Below, piece after piece: positions 17,982-35,763 of a stretch of DNA of 64,000 bases (the first letter of the stretch is position 1; each line of letters opens with the position of its first letter). A program made the translations under genes and the position numbers. The stretch is taken from positions 1 through 64,000 of the IMG/VR virus record IMGVR_UViG_3300035070_002626; one strand, written 5' to 3'. The notes beneath the pieces are model-generated. The model was not told where the DNA came from. It did no database searches and was given only the letters and a program-made list of their open reading frames with translations.

Positions 17982-19073
17982 CTAGCGCTCTTGGCTAGCT
18001 AGAATGTATTTGCCATACCGCTGATGGAACTCGTCGAAGTTCTTTAGCTTGGTTGGCTGGAACGGCAGATTGTATGTAGTAAGTGCAATTCGAGCACCCA
18101 TAACGACCAATTCAGTTTCAAAATTGTCCATGGCGTAGCGGAAGAAGTTGTCGCTCATCTTGTGAAACTCTGCATCTTTAACTTCGCCTAATGCTTGCTT
18201 GAGTTCGTAGCACATGGAGATAACCAGGCTATACATAGCCGATACTTCTTTAACTTCGAGTGTTTTAACTTTGCCACTCAACACATCTTCTGGATTGGGG
18301 AGCTTGCCTGCGATGCGTCGATGCGCCATAAACTTAACAGCGAGACCTTCACCAATGGAACCAGCAATCAAATCGGTCATTGTTACATCATCTACATCTT
18401 CGCTTAACAGCTCACTAACAAAGCTCCAGCTGCGGGGCGTAGCAAAACTACGGCTCACACTTTTAGCATCAAAGTCATACAAGTCTTGTTTAGCAAAGCT
18501 CAAATAACCAACTACATCTTCGTGGATGTCATTGTTAACAGCCCAATCCATCCAAGCTTCAAAGTCTGCCCGCATTTCGATGTGGATAAAGCGGTTAGCA
18601 AGCGGAGTAGGCATACGATACGTAACACCTTTGTCGCTTTCTCTATTGCCTGCTGCAATAATAACAACATTGTCGGGTAATTTATACTTGCCAATGCGCC
18701 GATTGAGAATCAACTGGTATGCTGCGGCTTGTACGCTAGGCGCTGCTGAGTTCATTTCGTCTAAGAACAATCCAACAACAGGATATTGTGCAGCAACTTC
18801 TTCGGTGGGAAGATCAATCGGTGGAGCCCAATCCATCAATCCCAAATCTTTGTTGAAAAATGGCATACCACGCAAATCAGTTGGGTCCATTTGTCCCAAA
18901 CGTAGATCGTACACAACACCATCCATATTTTCAACAATGTTGGTAACCACGTCCGATTTACCGATGCCTGGAGGTCCCCAAAGGAACACTGGGCGTTTTA
19001 CTTTAAATGCAACTTTGATTGCGCTAGCAGCGCCTTTAGCAGTTACGGTGCGATATTCAATTGCGTTTGACAT
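17982..19073 (-). CDS. MoxR-like AAA+ ATPase
   Basis: GPPGIGKS Walker A, LFLDE Walker B, AAGN, LANRF, TPRSW. Confidence 0.9.
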   Translation of the reverse strand: MSNAIEYRTVTAKGAASAIKVAFKVKRPVFLWGPPGIGKSDVVTNIVENMDGVVYDLRLGQMDPTDLRGMPFFNKDLGLMDWAPPIDLPTEEVAAQYPVVGLFLDEMNSAAPSVQAAAYQLILNRRIGKYKLPDNVVIIAAGNRESDKGVTYRMPTPLANRFIHIEMRADFEAWMDWAVNNDIHEDVVGYLSFAKQDLYDFDAKSVSRSFATPRSWSFVSELLSEDVDDVTMTDLIAGSIGEGLAVKFMAHRRIAGKLPNPEDVLSGKVKTLEVKEVSAMYSLVISMCYELKQALGEVKDAEFHKMSDNFFRYAMDNFETELVVMGARIALTTYNLPFQPTKLKNFDEFHQRYGKYILASQER

Positions 19074-19650: not shown

Positions 19651-20844
19651 TTAGAAAATTAATTTTGCAAATTCAGGAAAAGTTTTTTGAAAGTTTTCTT
19701 TGCGAATTTGATCCAACGCCCCGTTTACTTCTAGAAATTTGTCCCATTCGGCAGGATCCCTAGGTTGTTGGATAACATTAGTCAAGTCTTGGAATTCTTC
19801 GTCTTGACTGAGTTTTTCTATCACGGCTGTCTTTACCGATTCAGGCATGTTTTTAATAAACAAGTATGCCGGCTCGACCAGCAAATTCCAGTACGGTGGC
19901 AATGGCAGAATATTCATGATAGCTGCTTTAATTTCGGGTAGATAGAAAATGTTTAATACACCTACAGTGCAGATACAATCAATGTAGTATTTTACATTAT
20001 GCTCTTCAAAATATTTTTTCCAATCTGCGATATTGTTCTTAACAACTTCGTATTTTAACCCATGACGTATGTATTCAAAATGATCAGCAATACCGTCGAT
20101 GCTTACACCAATTTCAACTTCTTGGAAATGTTTAATATTTGGTATTTTGTGCACAATGTTAACACTGCCATTGGTATTGATGTATAATACAATATGAGAT
20201 GAGTGTCCAGTCTTTACTAATTGTTCAAGAAGTTTGATTACTTTTTTATTATACATAGGCTCGCCGCCGAATAATTCAAGACGCTTTAACCCAGGAGCCA
20301 TGTTGAGTATTTCTTCGAGTTGATCATCTGACCAATTTGTTGCAGCCTGATTGGTTACATAGTATTCTTTCCCGGTAAGTTTTTTTAGTTTTACGCTATC
20401 GGCTATCCAGCGATTGCTATCACCTGGATGACACACTCTACATTTAGCATTGCATATGTTTCCATTCTTGATAGTCAACACCTCTGGGCCACTGAGATAG
20501 TCACCGCTGTTAACTCGGTTAATTAATTCGTCAGCATATGTCTCGGAATCAATAAAAGAGTATTCACTTGTTGAATTAACTGGATCAAACAATCGCTGCC
20601 GCAAGCTTTTTTTATTGTTTTCTTCTTCGTGCCAGCAGCGGTTGCACACAGGGCTTTTTTTATTGTTAATAAAGTCCTGGCGCAGTTGTTCAATTTCGCT
20701 GCTACGCCATTGCTCTAGTATGCTGTTGCCTGATGCTTTCCATGTTGTGCCACCAAGATACGGGCAAGGGGAAAAGCTAGTTGACGGATGTGTAGTGCAT
20801 TGTATAAACGGGGCTACACAAAAATTCTCCGTCAACTTTTTCAT
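19651..20844 (-). CDS. Radical SAM protein with N-terminal twitch/SPASM-like Cys motif
   Basis: FCVAPF..PC..C..C N-terminus; CNAKCRVC; GGEP; TNGS; SIDG. Confidence 0.85.
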   Translation of the reverse strand: MKKLTENFCVAPFIQCTTHPSTSFSPCPYLGGTTWKASGNSILEQWRSSEIEQLRQDFINNKKSPVCNRCWHEEENNKKSLRQRLFDPVNSTSEYSFIDSETYADELINRVNSGDYLSGPEVLTIKNGNICNAKCRVCHPGDSNRWIADSVKLKKLTGKEYYVTNQAATNWSDDQLEEILNMAPGLKRLELFGGEPMYNKKVIKLLEQLVKTGHSSHIVLYINTNGSVNIVHKIPNIKHFQEVEIGVSIDGIADHFEYIRHGLKYEVVKNNIADWKKYFEEHNVKYYIDCICTVGVLNIFYLPEIKAAIMNILPLPPYWNLLVEPAYLFIKNMPESVKTAVIEKLSQDEEFQDLTNVIQQPRDPAEWDKFLEVNGALDQIRKENFQKTFPEFAKLIF

Positions 20845-20862
20845 TATATCAACCTTGTATTT

Positions 20863-20937
20863 TGGCATCCCGTAGGGGAATCGAACCCCTCTTGACGGCT
20901 TGAAAAGCCGTAGTCCTAACCGATAGACGAACGGGAC
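20863..20937 (-). tRNA. tRNA-Glu(UUC)
   Basis: Cloverleaf; anticodon arm ACGGC-TTTTCAA-GCCGT; GTTCGATTC T-loop; encoded CCA. Confidence 0.93.
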
Positions 20938-20940
20938 AAA

Positions 20941-21116
20941 TTAGGGGTGTATGTGAGTACCGCTTCAAAATAATCCTCTAGAGGTTACTCCACGCTTCCC
21001 ACTAACGACATACACTTGCCGGCATACTTGCATCGACCCTTTTTTTGTGACTGCGACATCACTTCAATCATATGGGATTTGGTAACCCATACTAGTTAGG
21101 AGCAACCTAACGTGTC
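20941..21116 (-). ncRNA. Candidate structured ncRNA between tRNA-Ser and tRNA-Glu
   Basis: No credible ORF; consecutive hairpins TTAGG/CCTAA, TATGGG/CCCATA, GTGA/TCAC and long-range GTGTATG/CATACAC. Confidence 0.4.
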
Positions 21117-21204
21117 TGGCAGACAGTGTGGGATTCGAACCCACGGAACCTTTCGGTTCGGCGGATTAGTAATCCGCTGCCTTCGACCACTCGGCCAACT
21201 GTCC
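21117..21204 (-). tRNA. tRNA-Ser with unusual ACU anticodon
   Basis: Class II cloverleaf with long variable arm; GCGGA-TTACTAA-TCCGC; G73; CCA. Confidence 0.88.
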
Positions 21205-21212
21205 ATTTATTC

Positions 21213-21287
21213 TGGCTCCGACGGTAGGGGTCGAACCTACGACCAATTGATTAACAGTCAACTGCTCTACCACTGAGCTACGTCGGA
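21213..21287 (-). tRNA. tRNA-Asn(GUU)
   Basis: TCCGACGTAGCTCAG...TTGA-CTGTTAA-TCAA...GTTCGAC...GCCA. Confidence 0.95.
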
Positions 21288-21300
21288 ATAACTTAATACT

Positions 21301-21329
21301 AATATAGTGGCTCACGTACCAAATGTCAA
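21301..21329 (-). promoter_or_regulatory. sigma70-type promoter for the tRNA cluster
   Basis: TTGACA-N17-TATATT immediately upstream of tRNA-Asn. Confidence 0.75.
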
Positions 21330-21961: not shown

Positions 21962-22219
21962 TTACACATAATTAGCCAGGTTATCTTCTTCTTCGTCTTT
22001 TTCTTCTTGATGCCTAGTGATGATTTCTTCCATTAGTTCACGACCAACCAACCCTTGTTCAATTTCGCGAAGTGCTGTCATAGCTTTGTTGCCCGGCTTG
22101 GTAATAAGTGGAGGGTCGCCGCGACCAATTTGCCGTGCACGTTCTACTGCAATCACAATGAGATCATATGGCGATCCACCAACGTTTTTGCGGCCTTTAT
22201 TGTTACTGATTCGAGCCAT
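21962..22219 (-). CDS. rpoZ: RNA polymerase omega subunit homolog
   Basis: MARIS...YDLIVIAVERARQI...K..TALREI..G, omega consensus. Confidence 0.85.
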   Translation of the reverse strand: MARISNNKGRKNVGGSPYDLIVIAVERARQIGRGDPPLITKPGNKAMTALREIEQGLVGRELMEEIITRHQEEKDEEEDNLANYV

Positions 22220-24104: not shown

Positions 24105-24239
24105 AATTAATGATTTTCTCGTGAGCAGGATTCTCTTTTGCTCAACGTATTAATTATGTAGACCTAACCTGTAAAAATGCAAAATCCAGCGATTTTGTAA
24201 TAAGATAAAATGAGAATGTCACATTGCTGCAACACTCTC

Positions 24240-24520
24240 TTGATCGTTCTGTTGCTAGGTGATCCACCCCGGGAGCCTAACTAGGCTGCCATTGCCATTT
24301 CTGGCGCTCTATTTGCGTTTGCATTTAGAAAGTTTGTTCGCGGTAACGGCGCTTACATCCCGGTAACTCCACTCTGCTATCTCGTCAGTCGATCCTAGTT
24401 CTGCCCCATCATAATTACTCTACGCCGTAAATTTGTAGTTTTTACGCTACAAAGTAATTATGGTGGAGCAGCGCGGTACTGCCCCGCGGTCCTGTCCGTA
24501 TTCACATCACTTCAACGTTA
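24240..24520 (-). ncRNA. ssrA: Two-piece (circularly permuted) tmRNA, alphaproteobacterial type
   Basis: Acceptor piece ends ...CGCGGGGCAGTACCGCGCTGCTCCACCA at 24461; intervening spacer 24408-24460; coding piece starts GGGGCAGAACTAGGATCGAC at 24407; tag ANANRAPEMAMAA* at 24322-24281; 3' CTAGCAACAGAA. Confidence 0.92.
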
Positions 24521-24527
24521 CAATCTA

Positions 24528-24556
24528 TTTATACACTAGTATTAGTTGTTTGTCAA
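24528..24556 (-). promoter_or_regulatory. Promoter for tmRNA
   Basis: TTGACA-N17-TATAAA. Confidence 0.7.
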
Positions 24557-24703
24557 CCTATTTTTTAAAGGTTCAATTGCTGCCGTTGCTTGACTGCGAT
24601 TCCAATTAAACTTCTTCATAGCATCAGCATATAGTTGTTCGTTGTCCTTGGATGCAACAATAAGTCCACGCAAGAAGTTATCTATATCAATCCAATTGTT
24701 CAT
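24542..24703 (-). CDS. Small hypothetical protein (53 aa, MNNWIDIDNF...)
   Basis: Translated by hand; ATGA overlap with the upstream gene. Confidence 0.55.
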   Translation of the reverse strand: MNNWIDIDNFLRGLIVASKDNEQLYADAMKKFNWNRSQATAAIEPLKNRLTNN

Positions 24704-29443: not shown

Positions 29444-29520
29444 TGGCGATCTCTGCAGGATTCGAACCTGCGACCTAGTGCTTAGAAGGCACTTGCTCTA
29501 TCCAGCTGAGCTAAGAGACC
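29444..29520 (-). tRNA. tRNA-Arg(UCU)
   Basis: AGTGC-CTTCTAA-GCACT; canonical D and T arms; CCA. Confidence 0.95.
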
Positions 29521-31223: not shown

Positions 31224-31940
31224 TTATACTGTATCTACTTGTTCGGTTAAAATTCTAAAAGTGTCGTTCCAGTCAGCAACTTTGTATGATTTGCCTCTGT
31301 TTTGTTCAGCTATTGCATCTGCTAAAGGGGCGTCATTGCCGCCGGGGAAAATCGCATCACCAAAAAAATGTAGTTCGTCAGTGTCGGCAAAATCAACTAA
31401 TATCTGACTTTTGTTATTGCCTTTTGGTGCAATATCTAATCCTGTTTCCCCACCTGATGTAGCAAGTAACTCTGGAAACATTAAGTTAAATGATTTAACA
31501 ATCCTAGCACGTTCACGTTGTGCTTTATCCCATGTAACGTATAATGCACGTTCGGTTAAACTAGCGTTACGACCTACTACACTAAAGTTTACCATACCAG
31601 ATCGTTCTTCGATGTGATTGCCAGTGCGTACTGGAAATTTACTTTCGTACTCACAACTGTCTAAGAAATACCTGGCAAGATCGGGTAACCTCCAATTACT
31701 AGTACGAACATTTTTATCGCCTTGCCACACATCACTACCAGAACATTGGTAAACACGCTGACATTTGTGGTAAATGTACTCGCCAATTTGTTCGACAGTT
31801 TTAGGTTTGTCGCTCCCAGTGACAAGATACACAAGATTGTTTTCACAAAACTTGCTAAACCACACAGCAAATTGTTTGTCCATGTGCTGCCTGCTATCAG
31901 TAAGTGTACCGTCTACATCAAATATGTACTTTTTTGCCAT
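31224..31940 (-). CDS. HAD-IIB phosphomannomutase-like enzyme (PMM family)
   Basis: FDVDGTLT, VTGSD, IE.R.GMVNFS..GR, GG...DI, FFGD...GGND. Confidence 0.85.
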   Translation of the reverse strand: MAKKYIFDVDGTLTDSRQHMDKQFAVWFSKFCENNLVYLVTGSDKPKTVEQIGEYIYHKCQRVYQCSGSDVWQGDKNVRTSNWRLPDLARYFLDSCEYESKFPVRTGNHIEERSGMVNFSVVGRNASLTERALYVTWDKAQRERARIVKSFNLMFPELLATSGGETGLDIAPKGNNKSQILVDFADTDELHFFGDAIFPGGNDAPLADAIAEQNRGKSYKVADWNDTFRILTEQVDTV

Positions 31941-33444
31941 CTTCTTTCCTGATTACATAATTGTTAATTATTAATACATCAAGACCGCATTTCTTAAATG
32001 TGGCAACTGCATCCTCGGGTGTTTCTACAATAGGCTCCTGGCAGTTGAAGCTGGTGTTGAGCAACATAGGAACGCCTGTTAGGGTATAGAATGCATTTAT
32101 TAAGTCGTAGTAGCAAGAATTAAACTCGCGCTGTACAGTCTGTATACGTGCTGTGCCGTCTACATGTGTTACACCAGGAATAGTATTACTTGTAACTGGC
32201 ATGATACGGCTCATGTACGGACTAGGCTGGTTGGTATCAAAATAATCTTGATAATGTTCATACAATACACTTGGCGCAAATGGTCTGAAGTCTTCACGCA
32301 GTTTAATTTTACTGTTGATAATATCTTTAATATCTGGCTTGCGTGGATCTGCAAGTATACTCCGATTGCCTAACGCTCTGTGCCCGCTTTCGCTAGCACC
32401 CTGATACCATCCAACTATTGCACCATCGGCAATAGCAGCGGCAACTTCAGTGTATACTTCTTCCATTGATTTTTGTTGATAGTACAATCCGTTGAATATA
32501 GCAGTGTCTACAATGTAGTCTTCTCCTGCATACACTGTAGGAATATGTGTGTTACCATTTAAAATGTAATCAGCATGCATGTAAACGCCTAATGCCTGGC
32601 CTTCGTCACCAGGAGCCGGCGGCACATGTACATTTGTGTAATGCTTTGTAAACTCTTCATTCATATAACCGTTGTATGCAACTCCGCCTGCAATGCATAA
32701 ATTGTCTGATGTTTTAAGAGGATATACGTGTTTTGTAACAAGTTCAAATGTAACTTGTTGTAGCGTAAATGCTACATCCTCTTTAGCAACACGCTGTATA
32801 ATATCATGTGCACCGTCAGGGAGTCGTTGATTGGGATTTTCTAAATAACGATGAATCATTGTGTAAACTTCATCGTTATATTTTCCAAATCCTACCAAGC
32901 CCATAACCTTGCCGGCTTGGAGGAATTCAAATCCAAGATTCTGTGCTAATGTGTTCCAACACCCGCCAATTGACAGTTCCTTGGTCAAGTCAGTGATTGT
33001 ACCGTGTTTATTAATAAAGATACAATTAAAATTATAACCCTTGTCGTCAATCGCTAGTACATCACTTTCTTTAAAGCCTGAATTTAGAAATGCATAAGCA
33101 GCATGACTTTGGTGATGGTCGATATAGTAATAACTATCTGTGTGTAATCTATCCCATAGATTGTTTGGCTTAAACTTTAAAAAATCTGTGTCCGGTAAGG
33201 TCTCTTCTACTAAGTCTTCAACATATTCATGTCCTAAATTAGAAATAGTAAATGCAAATACTTGCTCTTTATTATAGTTAGGCAAGAAATGGTCGTCGAA
33301 AAAATCCCTACAGGGCACAGGGTCACGCAAGAAATCCGGATTAAGATTATGCTTTACTCTGGTGTGCCGTTCTATTTGGTTATGAACCAGACCGTTGTAT
33401 GTATTGTGATCGTGGTGATTTACTGCTATAGAAAATATTTTCAT
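31918..33444 (-). CDS. Carbamoyltransferase, NodU/CmcH family (copy 2)
   Basis: HHQSHA, AGKVMGL, GGVAYN, RALGNRSILADP, REDFRPFAP, HVDGTAR, LNTSFN. Confidence 0.9.
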   Translation of the reverse strand: MKIFSIAVNHHDHNTYNGLVHNQIERHTRVKHNLNPDFLRDPVPCRDFFDDHFLPNYNKEQVFAFTISNLGHEYVEDLVEETLPDTDFLKFKPNNLWDRLHTDSYYYIDHHQSHAAYAFLNSGFKESDVLAIDDKGYNFNCIFINKHGTITDLTKELSIGGCWNTLAQNLGFEFLQAGKVMGLVGFGKYNDEVYTMIHRYLENPNQRLPDGAHDIIQRVAKEDVAFTLQQVTFELVTKHVYPLKTSDNLCIAGGVAYNGYMNEEFTKHYTNVHVPPAPGDEGQALGVYMHADYILNGNTHIPTVYAGEDYIVDTAIFNGLYYQQKSMEEVYTEVAAAIADGAIVGWYQGASESGHRALGNRSILADPRKPDIKDIINSKIKLREDFRPFAPSVLYEHYQDYFDTNQPSPYMSRIMPVTSNTIPGVTHVDGTARIQTVQREFNSCYYDLINAFYTLTGVPMLLNTSFNCQEPIVETPEDAVATFKKCGLDVLIINNYVIRKEDGKKVHI

Positions 33445-33487
33445 CAGACTCTCTGTTTTGTTAAACATATAATAACACTGATAGTTG

Positions 33488-34081
33488 CTATACGTCAACC
33501 ATTCTTTTTAAATCGTGAATAGTAAAATCACTATCTTTGGCGATAGTCACTATTTCGCCCATTCGTTCAAACACTTCTTCGCCATCTGCGGTCTCTGTTT
33601 GATTAACATGTGCCTGAGCTTCATCTAACCAAAACGTGGTAAAATAATCAATATCGCTATTGTCTGTAAAATTAAACTTGTATATACCATTGAATCCAAA
33701 ATAAAGGTTGTTAATAATGAACTCAGGCGGGGTTTCATTTTTTTCGTGGTAGTCACTAACAATATTCTCAGGCCAGTTAACATAAAACGGCATTGTGTGC
33801 AGCACTGTGTGCAGTATTGAATTATTATCTATTGTTATATCTAGTAGTTCAACGCTTAAATCAGCTACAATATTATTACTATCGTCAACAATGGTATCGT
33901 CGTTGGTTTTGTTATAGTGTTCAATGGACAATACATTTTGCAACAATGGTTGAATGTTTAACGTGTGTTCATTAATCTCAGAAATTTCAGTATCAACATA
34001 TACTGTATCGTTAACAGATAGTCTCACCTTAGGTGATTTTCCATTGGCACAGTTGCCACGGAGCTTAATCTTTATTTCCAT
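33488..34081 (-). CDS. Hypothetical beta-rich protein (paralog family)
   Basis: SPKVRLSVND...HYNKT..DT...VEL.DITID...LYFGFNG.Y.F.F. Confidence 0.6.
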   Translation of the reverse strand: MEIKIKLRGNCANGKSPKVRLSVNDTVYVDTEISEINEHTLNIQPLLQNVLSIEHYNKTNDDTIVDDSNNIVADLSVELLDITIDNNSILHTVLHTMPFYVNWPENIVSDYHEKNETPPEFIINNLYFGFNGIYKFNFTDNSDIDYFTTFWLDEAQAHVNQTETADGEEVFERMGEIVTIAKDSDFTIHDLKRMVDV

Positions 34082-34099: not shown

Positions 34100-35653
34100 T
34101 TAAAAATTTTGCTTTGAATGTGCCCATGGTTCAATGATATCAGCTGATAAACTGTTCTGTTCTCGATCAAACTTTACATTGTTAATCATAGTTCCAGTAT
34201 TATCTGTTAGTAGCTGAACTTCGTTCCAGCTACTCAGCAATTGCTTTGTATAGTTTGCTGCTTCGAAAACTGGATACCCCAATTCTTCAACATGTGATTG
34301 TAGGATAATCCTTCTCTTCAATCGTTCCTTGTATGTTAATGTCGGATTATCAACACAAACCCAATCATTAACATGATCATTGTCCTGCACTAGGTTATAT
34401 TTTTCTCTATCATCATATAATGGAGTGCGTTTTAATAGATTCAGTGTAAGTCCTAAATTTACTTCTTCGATTGTGCCGTTATCTAGATATGGCTTGTATC
34501 GAGTAAACATCTCTTTTGTTAAATCAAAATCTTCTATGGTCTCTGTAGGATACCCTACAATCATTAACATACGTACTTTGATCCCTACTCTATCTAGTTG
34601 GGAAATGCTGTAGTTAAGATCTTCTTCGCTATATCCCTTTTTCATGTGTTCTCTCACTGCCGGAGAACCGCTTTCGATTCCAACTAACATTGTACCTGCA
34701 CCAGCTGCCTTCATGACATCAAAGTCTTCGGGTGGCATCTGTTTTGGCCCACGTACAATAAAATGGGTGTCCCATATAAACTTTTTTTCTTCTGGTAGTG
34801 TTTTTCTGTATTCAGCTAACTCTAGAGTCATTTCCCTAAATGCTTTCATACTACCATTAATTAGACTATCTGTAAATCTAAATGCAGTTGCACCATATGC
34901 TTCAACTTGTTGACGCATTTCGTCAGCAATATTTTTGCCACTGCGATAGTAAAACTTTGGCCACATACTTGCAACATCACAAAATGTGCATTTTCTTACA
35001 CATCCTCTACTGCCAGTAATCGGCAATGCTTCCAACCCTTTGGAATTAGTGTAGGTTTTTAGTTCGTAGTCGTCATAATTGGGAAAAGCTAAACTATCAA
35101 CATCTACGATTTGCTGAGGAGGCTTGCCATTAATTCCAGGATAATCAATGTTTCCTTTAAGTAACTCGACTAATGCAAGTTCTCCTTCGCCCCGTATATA
35201 TGCGTCAATGATACGATTTTCGTGCAGAGACTCTGCAAATTTAAAATCTGTAGCAATTCCGCCGCCTCCGATTACAATTTTAATAGCAGGGTTGAGCTTT
35301 TTAATTGCAACAGATAGTAAGCGAGTTGCTCGTTGACTATTATAACTAAACACACTCATACCAACCCATGTTGGATTTTGATTAACAATTTTTTCGGCCC
35401 ACGATTCGATAACAGGAGCTAATAATTTCCATGTTTTATTATTATAGAATGTGTGATAAAAAAAGAAGTTGTCAATGGCGTTATGTAGTTCGTGATTATG
35501 AAACTGCTGATCAATTTCGGCATTAAGGTCAAAGATAATACTACTAAATCCGTGTGCAGATAAACTTCCCTTTAGCAATGCTGCTCCTGCTGGAGTATAC
35601 CCAAAATCGTCAACGATTCTCGGCGGTATTACTAACACAATATCTTTATTCAT
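34100..35653 (-). CDS. B12-binding radical SAM enzyme (class B methylase-like)
   Basis: N-terminal cobalamin-binding fold (GMSVF, IVIGG, GEGE); SRGCVRKCTFC; GIESGS; IVGYPTET. Confidence 0.88.
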   Translation of the reverse strand: MNKDIVLVIPPRIVDDFGYTPAGAALLKGSLSAHGFSSIIFDLNAEIDQQFHNHELHNAIDNFFFYHTFYNNKTWKLLAPVIESWAEKIVNQNPTWVGMSVFSYNSQRATRLLSVAIKKLNPAIKIVIGGGGIATDFKFAESLHENRIIDAYIRGEGELALVELLKGNIDYPGINGKPPQQIVDVDSLAFPNYDDYELKTYTNSKGLEALPITGSRGCVRKCTFCDVASMWPKFYYRSGKNIADEMRQQVEAYGATAFRFTDSLINGSMKAFREMTLELAEYRKTLPEEKKFIWDTHFIVRGPKQMPPEDFDVMKAAGAGTMLVGIESGSPAVREHMKKGYSEEDLNYSISQLDRVGIKVRMLMIVGYPTETIEDFDLTKEMFTRYKPYLDNGTIEEVNLGLTLNLLKRTPLYDDREKYNLVQDNDHVNDWVCVDNPTLTYKERLKRRIILQSHVEELGYPVFEAANYTKQLLSSWNEVQLLTDNTGTMINNVKFDREQNSLSADIIEPWAHSKQNF

Positions 35654-35687
35654 ATTTCTATTTACCGCTAATCGCATATTTGTGTTA

Positions 35688-35763
35688 TGGTGCCCCAAGA
35701 GAGACTCGAACTCCCGACCTACTGATTACAAATCAGTTGCTCTACCAGCTGAGCTATTGGGGC
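35688..35763 (-). tRNA. tRNA-Thr(UGU)
   Basis: ACTGA-TTTGTAA-TCAGT; CCA. Confidence 0.95.

Follow-up and report, generated by a model that had tools for sequence, protein, structure and literature searches.

The stretch analysed here, called the window below, is the first 64 kb (64,000 nucleotides) of IMG/VR record IMGVR_UViG_3300035070_002626, a single linear contig of 299,910 bp with 40% GC that is rated 86% complete (CheckV, from the IMG/VR record). ARAGORN identified nine tRNA genes in this genome, of which seven lie in the window, all on the minus strand, and one, at 21117-21204, is the sole tRNA-Ser. This gene was called, in the window as well as in the whole genome, as an 88-nt class II tRNA with the anticodon ACU. 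A sequence-only reading of the window had pointed to the loop UU-ACU-AA on a serine body at this position, and to a tRNA-Arg(UCU) gene carried by the same phage; ARAGORN, Rfam and the sequence itself confirmed the former, and ARAGORN also located the latter. The features considered here are as follows.

21117..21204, minus strand: tRNA-Ser(ACU) (ARAGORN; Rfam 56.5 bits; folding z-score -3.07; cloverleaf pairs kept in 18 homologues)
21170..21170, minus strand: A34 wobble base, T on the plus strand (sequence; ACT in 14/14, 26/26 and 53/53 homologues)
21213..21287, minus strand: tRNA-Asn(GUU), 8 nt upstream of tRNA-Ser (ARAGORN; Rfam 73.4 bits)
21301..21329, minus strand: predicted sigma-70-like promoter, TTGACA-17 nt-TATATT, 11/12 matches (consensus scan)
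20863..20937, minus strand: tRNA-Glu(UUC), 179 nt downstream of tRNA-Ser (ARAGORN)
29444..29520, minus strand: tRNA-Arg(UCU), the cognate AGA reader (ARAGORN; Rfam 69.4 bits)

The candidate promoter lies 13 nt upstream of tRNA-Asn(GUU), which is probably the first gene of a transcript shared with tRNA-Ser(ACU). One metatranscriptome contig covers the Glu-Ser-Asn segment, a result in which DNA carry-over is possible. In some relatives tRNA-Glu directly abuts tRNA-Ser, as seen from the array order in contigs L009 and L434 and from metagenome joints that link 21204/21205 to 20857/20862, and the presence of such joints in metagenome variants indicates that the order of the tRNA array varies among strains. 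Within 20857-21205 these joints go back by approximately 345 nt, with CATTC in between. Just upstream of the tRNA cluster, an 85-aa ORF (21962-22219, minus strand) matches the Rpb6/omega family (PF01192, E 5.4e-09) and is kept in close relatives. Two radical SAM proteins are encoded at 19651-20868 and 34100-35698, both on the minus strand, one of them with a B12-binding domain; the ORF at 19651-20868 starts within the 3' end of tRNA-Glu.

The match of tRNA-Ser(ACU) to Rfam family RF00005 (E 4.3e-10) is well above the gathering score of 29, and the folding z-score of its strand was calculated relative to shuffles. From the Rfam alignment and the sequence, the molecule has a 7-bp acceptor stem, a D stem of 3 bp plus G13-A22, and an anticodon stem GCGGA/UCCGC that encloses the loop U32 U33 A34 C35 U36 A37 A38. 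The variable arm, between positions 44 and 48, consists of a 5-bp stem with a GAAA loop, and is followed by a T stem of 5 bp, the discriminator G73 and a gene-encoded CCA. In E. coli, the identity set of tRNA-Ser comprises the G73 discriminator together with G2:C71, A3:U70 and C11:G24, and all of these elements can be read in the phage tRNA. When 18 distinct ACU tRNAs were compared, G2:C71 and C11:G24 were invariant and A3:U70 was present in 17; those with the window's own body type (family A) carry a G1-U72 wobble pair. SerRS recognizes its tRNA by the long variable arm together with the D and acceptor stems and ignores the anticodon, so that an ACU anticodon leaves serine identity unaffected and a change of G34 to A should not disturb charging; serine charging by SerRS is thus expected. 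The gene therefore shows the tRNA-scoring cloverleaf, the long variable arm and the identity set of a bacterial-type class II tRNA-Ser, with ACU in place of the GCU anticodon of the bacterial tRNA-Ser of the AGY box.

Homologues were collected with a pattern that covered the anticodon arm and the start of the variable arm and in which the anticodon was written NNN. In IMG/VR, this free-anticodon scan returned ACT in 14 of 14 contigs of family A (88 nt) and in 26 of 26 contigs of family B, another body type (93 nt, with the loop CUACUAA). In metagenome contigs it returned ACT in 53 of 53, representing 11 full-length sequence variants, some of the 53 being the same as IMG/VR records. A34 is thus conserved in all 93 free-anticodon homologues (14 + 26 + 53), with no reversal to G. 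The gene is furthermore covered by contigs from independent marine runs, two of DNA and one a metatranscriptome, and no variant at 21170 was found among the variants listed.

Covariation was analysed in an alignment of the 18 distinct ACU tRNAs, which represent families A and B as well as two minor types and a bacterial metagenome-assembled genome (MAG). Standard pairing was found in 450 of 450 cells (18 tRNAs, 25 pairs), and 18 of the 25 pairs showed compensatory change on both sides, including all five pairs of the variable arm. The covariation score was 0.65, versus 0.20 in shuffles, and the signal was lost when the partners were slid relative to each other. Columns U33 to A38 were invariant in these tRNAs, and ACU stayed while the stems and the D and variable loops underwent many changes. 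The fold of tRNA-Ser(ACU) is under selection. The sequence-only reading had named an assembly error as the outcome that would overturn it, and the possibility that the anticodon results from faulty assembly or sequencing, or that the gene is a decaying pseudogene, is already refuted: the same base occurs in every free-anticodon homologue from IMG/VR and the metagenomes, in contigs from many independent metagenomes of 17 studies, within an intact cloverleaf with compensatory changes, an encoded CCA and a promoter-like site upstream.

The DNA polymerase of the phage is of the T4 type, and its closest relatives are those of Sinorhizobium phage Phosso (52% amino acid identity) and Agrobacterium phage Atu_ph07 (46%), with those of Rak2-like jumbo phages next. 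No close DNA relative was found among GenBank phages, and in Phosso and Atu_ph07 no close homologue of tRNA-Ser(ACU) was detected, only T-loop matches. The 3-kb stretch around tRNA-Ser is present in 20 public runs from 17 studies, all of them marine, seawater, estuary or salt-marsh metagenomes except for one wastewater metagenome. The phage-like genome and the mainly marine runs identify the source as an uncultured marine large phage, the host of which is possibly an alphaproteobacterium. The window encodes a permuted (two-piece) tmRNA of the alpha type at 24238-24573 on the minus strand (Rfam alpha_tmRNA 101.3 bits, tmRNA_permuted 104.6 bits), the tag of which, read off the Rfam alignment, is about ANANRAPEMAMAA; permuted tmRNAs are also present in related contigs L002 and L011. 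The tmRNA did not lead to the host: four chosen genomes gave no match, and of 401 genomes sampled from the class to which G001, a Thalassobium (Rhodobacteraceae) MAG, belongs, 5 gave only weak matches of 40-60 nt.

Two NodU/TobZ-like carbamoyltransferases are encoded in the window, at 920-2458 on the plus strand and 31918-33498 on the minus strand (PHROG 1601, E about 1e-107 each). Carbamoyltransferases of this type combine a YrdC-like with a Kae1-like domain, a pairing also met in t6A synthesis, and tRNAs that read ANN codons need t6A37. Several of the phage tRNAs are readers of ANN codons, and a tie between the carbamoyltransferases and t6A37 of these tRNAs is pure speculation.

In order to follow the anticodon across related phages, we made use of a gene for a MoxR-like AAA ATPase (window 17982-19073, minus strand; PHROG 1297) located 2 kb from tRNA-Ser. 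This ATPase is unusually conserved. No fewer than 600 IMG/VR stretches encode relatives of it, with 71-100% amino acid identity in the top 80, on contigs of up to 340 kb, and the protein is a handy marker of the phage clade. AGY-type tRNA-Ser genes within 10 kb of the ATPase, a sample chosen independently of the tRNA, amounted to 20 loci, 12 with ACU and 8 with GCU, and never both. In the ATPase tree, ACU rows fall into two clades in which every row is ACU (3 of 3, namely the window and two others, and 10 of 10). Each of these clades adjoins GCU rows, which forces two state changes, and within either clade (13 rows) there is no reversal.

Additional ACU body types are represented in the clade sample by L436, by L447, L463 and L466, by L453 and by L488. 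The identity of ACU to GCU bodies does not exceed 76% within this sample and 86% when all sampled GCU tRNAs are considered, and an unusual D arm is common to L488 (ACU) and L472 (GCU). The tRNA tree places ACU in four positions, and a single ACU clade is also compatible with it (p-AU 0.68). Among viral tRNA-Ser genes with the D arm of the window type, GCU is the commoner anticodon, with more than 120 loci versus 41 for ACU. Both an ACU and a GCU serine tRNA are encoded on one related contig, L003, which suggests that the two are not redundant.

No ACU homologue was found among GenBank phages, in which the best match, from Aeromonas phage TSW001 (84% identity), has GCU, as do many phage arrays in IMG/VR. 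In cellular genomes, only one of 120 pattern matches is a tRNA. It is a chromosomal tRNA-Ser(ACU) at L219:6459-6551, in a bacterial MAG with 32% GC (G004), beside flagellar, SpoU and sigma-70 genes. This MAG also carries tRNA-Arg(ACG) and a TadA-like ORF, and no GCU anticodon was seen among the 31 tRNAs found in it; the homologous tRNA is GCU in 28 of 28 relatives, and the ACU of the MAG could reflect either recent mutation or an error. The literature searched contained no description of a natural phage tRNA-Ser(ACU). What the sequence-only reading had presented as a single oddity is instead a fixed, inherited trait of a large group of environmental phages.

We also considered whether these phages follow a general A34 strategy. 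Other A34 calls are approximately tenfold enriched in ACU arrays, but they were weak on inspection and the idea was set aside. The Leu(AAG) calls, which recur in family B arrays (L015:130-206, L034:3775-3851, L041:6444-6520, L051:5478-5554 and others), are 77-nt class I tRNAs that lack a long variable arm and have C33 instead of the universal U33, and the Phe(AAA) calls, of 96 nt, are doubtful. A split-box A34 is found in a tRNA-Asn(AUU) at L043:13498-13573 and L046:3905-3980, which is one sequence on two contigs and represents the G34A form of a body found with GUU in L041 and L017. A family A contig encodes a tRNA-Arg(GCG) (L002:6015-6091), with G34 where bacteria normally have ACG; Arg(ACG) itself is present in none of the ACU-bearing loci versus 13 in GCU-bearing loci. 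Within the clade defined by the ATPase, ARAGORN also reports tRNAs with the amber-reading anticodon CUA, labelled Pyl, in L448 and L504, which are possible suppressors.

Codons were counted in 275 long ORFs of the phage genome. The sequence-only reading had proposed a comparison of AGT with AGC, and AGT turned out to be the commonest serine codon, with 2353 codons (41% of Ser), as compared to 1326 (23%) for AGC. Other tRNAs of the phage match frequent codons that end in A or U, such as GAA, ACA and TTA. AGT richness accounts for the carriage of a tRNA for the AGY box; it does not clearly account for the choice of A over G. Indeed, in loci selected by pattern, the share of AGT is equal in ACU and GCU arrays (34% each), and AGT richness therefore fails to explain why A34 replaced G34. 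In clade-matched loci, those with ACU are more AT-rich, with a T3 of 0.62 versus 0.54 for GCU, and their AGT/AGY ratio is 0.63 versus 0.51 (p 0.07), a comparison that comprises only two independent contrasts.

Textbook wobble rules have A34 avoided, particularly in split codon boxes, where inosine or loose pairing would lead to missense errors. Among the closest known systems is the canonical tRNA-Ser(GCU) of bacteria and phages, which has the same class II architecture, G73, G2:C71, A3:U70, C11:G24, U36-A37-A38 and codon box. It differs in its G34, which pairs with AGC in Watson-Crick fashion and with AGU through wobble, whereas the phage tRNA has A34. A natural unmodified A34 is known from the translation-competent tRNA-Thr(AGU) of Mycoplasma, which serves a four-codon box. 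Tolerance of A34 in such tRNAs belongs to reduced genomes and four-codon boxes in which loose reading is harmless; the phage tRNA resembles them in retaining an encoded A34, unmodified in Mycoplasma and probably so in the phage, but serves a split box, for which a strict U reader would be expected. Context for the Mollicutes is given in PMC3711424.

Direct decoding data come from an engineered tRNA with the ACU anticodon in E. coli (Schmitt, Tittle and Fisk 2024, PMC11066159). This orthogonal tRNA reassigned AGU at 9.4% and AGG at 0.36%, AGC and AGA being below detection, and cDNA sequencing gave no inosine signal. It shares with the phage tRNA the anticodon, U33 and A37-A38; it is, however, a man-made molecule on an archaeal body, that of M. 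jannaschii tRNA-Tyr, with C32 and charged with tyrosine, whereas the phage tRNA is natural and has a serine body with, in family A, U32. The analogy is limited by these differences in body and loop, and by the fact that the TadA of the phage host may differ. Of the effects of A34 suggested in the sequence-only reading, a preference of the unmodified base for AGU is the best-supported, given that AGT is the top serine codon and that the ACU tRNA in E. coli essentially reads AGU only (PMC11066159).

Alternatively, as the sequence-only reading had suggested, host TadA could deaminate A34 to I34, and the tRNA would then read AGU, AGC and partly AGA, placing serine at arginine codons. We regard this as very unlikely. 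The loop UUACUAA does offer an encoded A34 after U33, both U33-A34-C35 and A37-A38 agree with a TadA substrate loop, and some bacterial TadA enzymes also accept tRNA-Leu(AAG) (PMC8266599; PMC11066159). However, the window tRNA departs from the Arg2-type loop C32-U33-A34-C35-G36-A37-A38 at U36 and also, like the rest of family A, at U32. In the E. coli study, an ACU tRNA stayed unmodified even in an otherwise identical loop and alterations of position 32, 37 or 38 blocked TadA on other anticodons; its authors regard the enzyme as highly specific for the loop of tRNA-Arg2 (PMC11066159). The same comparison sets the phage tRNA apart from tRNA-Arg(ACG), which TadA converts to ICG and which also has an encoded A34, U33, C35, A37 and A38; I34 is harmless in the four-codon box of the latter, whereas in the split box of the phage tRNA-Ser it would misread AGA. 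No TadA-superfamily deaminase (PF00383, PF14437) was found in the phage genome, which is 86% complete. Since AGA makes up 28% of Arg codons (976 codons), deamination would be costly, and yet ACU is strictly conserved; tRNA-Arg(UCU), moreover, would compete against any misreading in the AGN box. Only slightly less doubtful is the proposal that the altered anticodon serves defence evasion, with a host anticodon nuclease or other tRNA-targeting effector recognizing G34 of tRNA-Ser(GCU) and the A34 copy escaping it and restoring AGY decoding. Resistance of phage tRNAs to host tRNases through changes in the anticodon loop has been documented (van den Berg et al. 2023, PMC10264068), and the ACU trait is clade-wide and stable. 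Such phage-encoded tRNAs likewise have an anticodon loop off the cellular norm, but the changes in them spare the anticodon and its reading and correspond to known nuclease targets, whereas in tRNA-Ser(ACU) the anticodon itself is altered. No nuclease specific for tRNA-Ser(GCU) was found in the literature searched, and PMC10264068 describes Ser(GCU) of mycobacteria as a serine tRNA that is not targeted. Furthermore, A34 forfeits the reading of AGC, a cost that a change at 32, 37 or 38 would avoid, and RtcB was not found in the phage genome. A search there for T4 RNA ligase, for which the positive control did not work, also gave no match and carries no weight.

Neutral drift under AT pressure is a serious rival, although we consider it improbable on balance. 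AT-biased mutation would have changed G34 to A34, and the change would have been tolerated, since the anticodon is of no concern to SerRS and AGU is more frequent than AGC, and then inherited without any advantage of A over G. The equal AGT share in pattern-selected ACU and GCU arrays and the higher AT content of ACU loci in the clade sample are in line with this, and the singleton ACU in the bacterial MAG, against GCU in all of its relatives, indicates that the mutation arises sporadically. On the other hand, the absence of any reversal from A to G, both in the 93 free-anticodon homologues and in the 13 rows of the ATPase-tree clades, argues against neutral drift, the more so as stems, D loop and variable loop changed repeatedly in the meantime. 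The occurrence of ACU in at least two separate clades, and the retention of both ACU and GCU by contig L003, also speak against drift.

The explanation that we favour, and consider probable, is that the gene is a functional phage-encoded serine tRNA, specialised for AGU, in which A34 is unmodified and kept by selection. In this tRNA, the G34 of the usual AGY reader would have been replaced by A34 with serine charging retained. A34 would most likely stay unmodified, with A37 probably carrying t6A, and, by extension from E. coli, would pair with AGU in Watson-Crick fashion and essentially not at all with AGC, AGA or AGG. The molecule would thus act as a codon-specific supplement for AGU, the most used serine codon of the phage, the reading of AGC being left to the tRNA-Ser(GCU) of the host. 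Its transcription would probably proceed together with tRNA-Asn, from the strong promoter-like site just upstream, and the ACU trait would be inherited and selectively maintained in a large group of environmental large phages.

A wider formulation, to which we give somewhat less than even credence, is that the phage clade marked by the ATPase (at least 600 IMG/VR stretches) swapped G34 for A34 on two or more branches of the ATPase tree and has retained the change. Its ACU tRNAs would then be the first natural, selected split-box A34 tRNAs, acting as unmodified decoders of AGU only, with the AGY box divided between phage and host.

If true, the phage would have a tRNA supply of its own for the serine codon that it uses most. 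A natural and strongly conserved tRNA-Ser(ACU) family, present across many environmental phages, would be an evolved, rather than engineered, counter-example to the avoidance of A34, and would provide a direct route to how unmodified A34 decodes in vivo. It also opens the questions of how TadA discriminates ACG from ACU, and of whether phages adjust the decoding of individual codons instead of pairs of codons. For genome annotation, ACU serine tRNAs should not be corrected or discarded as errors, and models of codon adaptation in phages would have to handle AGU and AGC separately.
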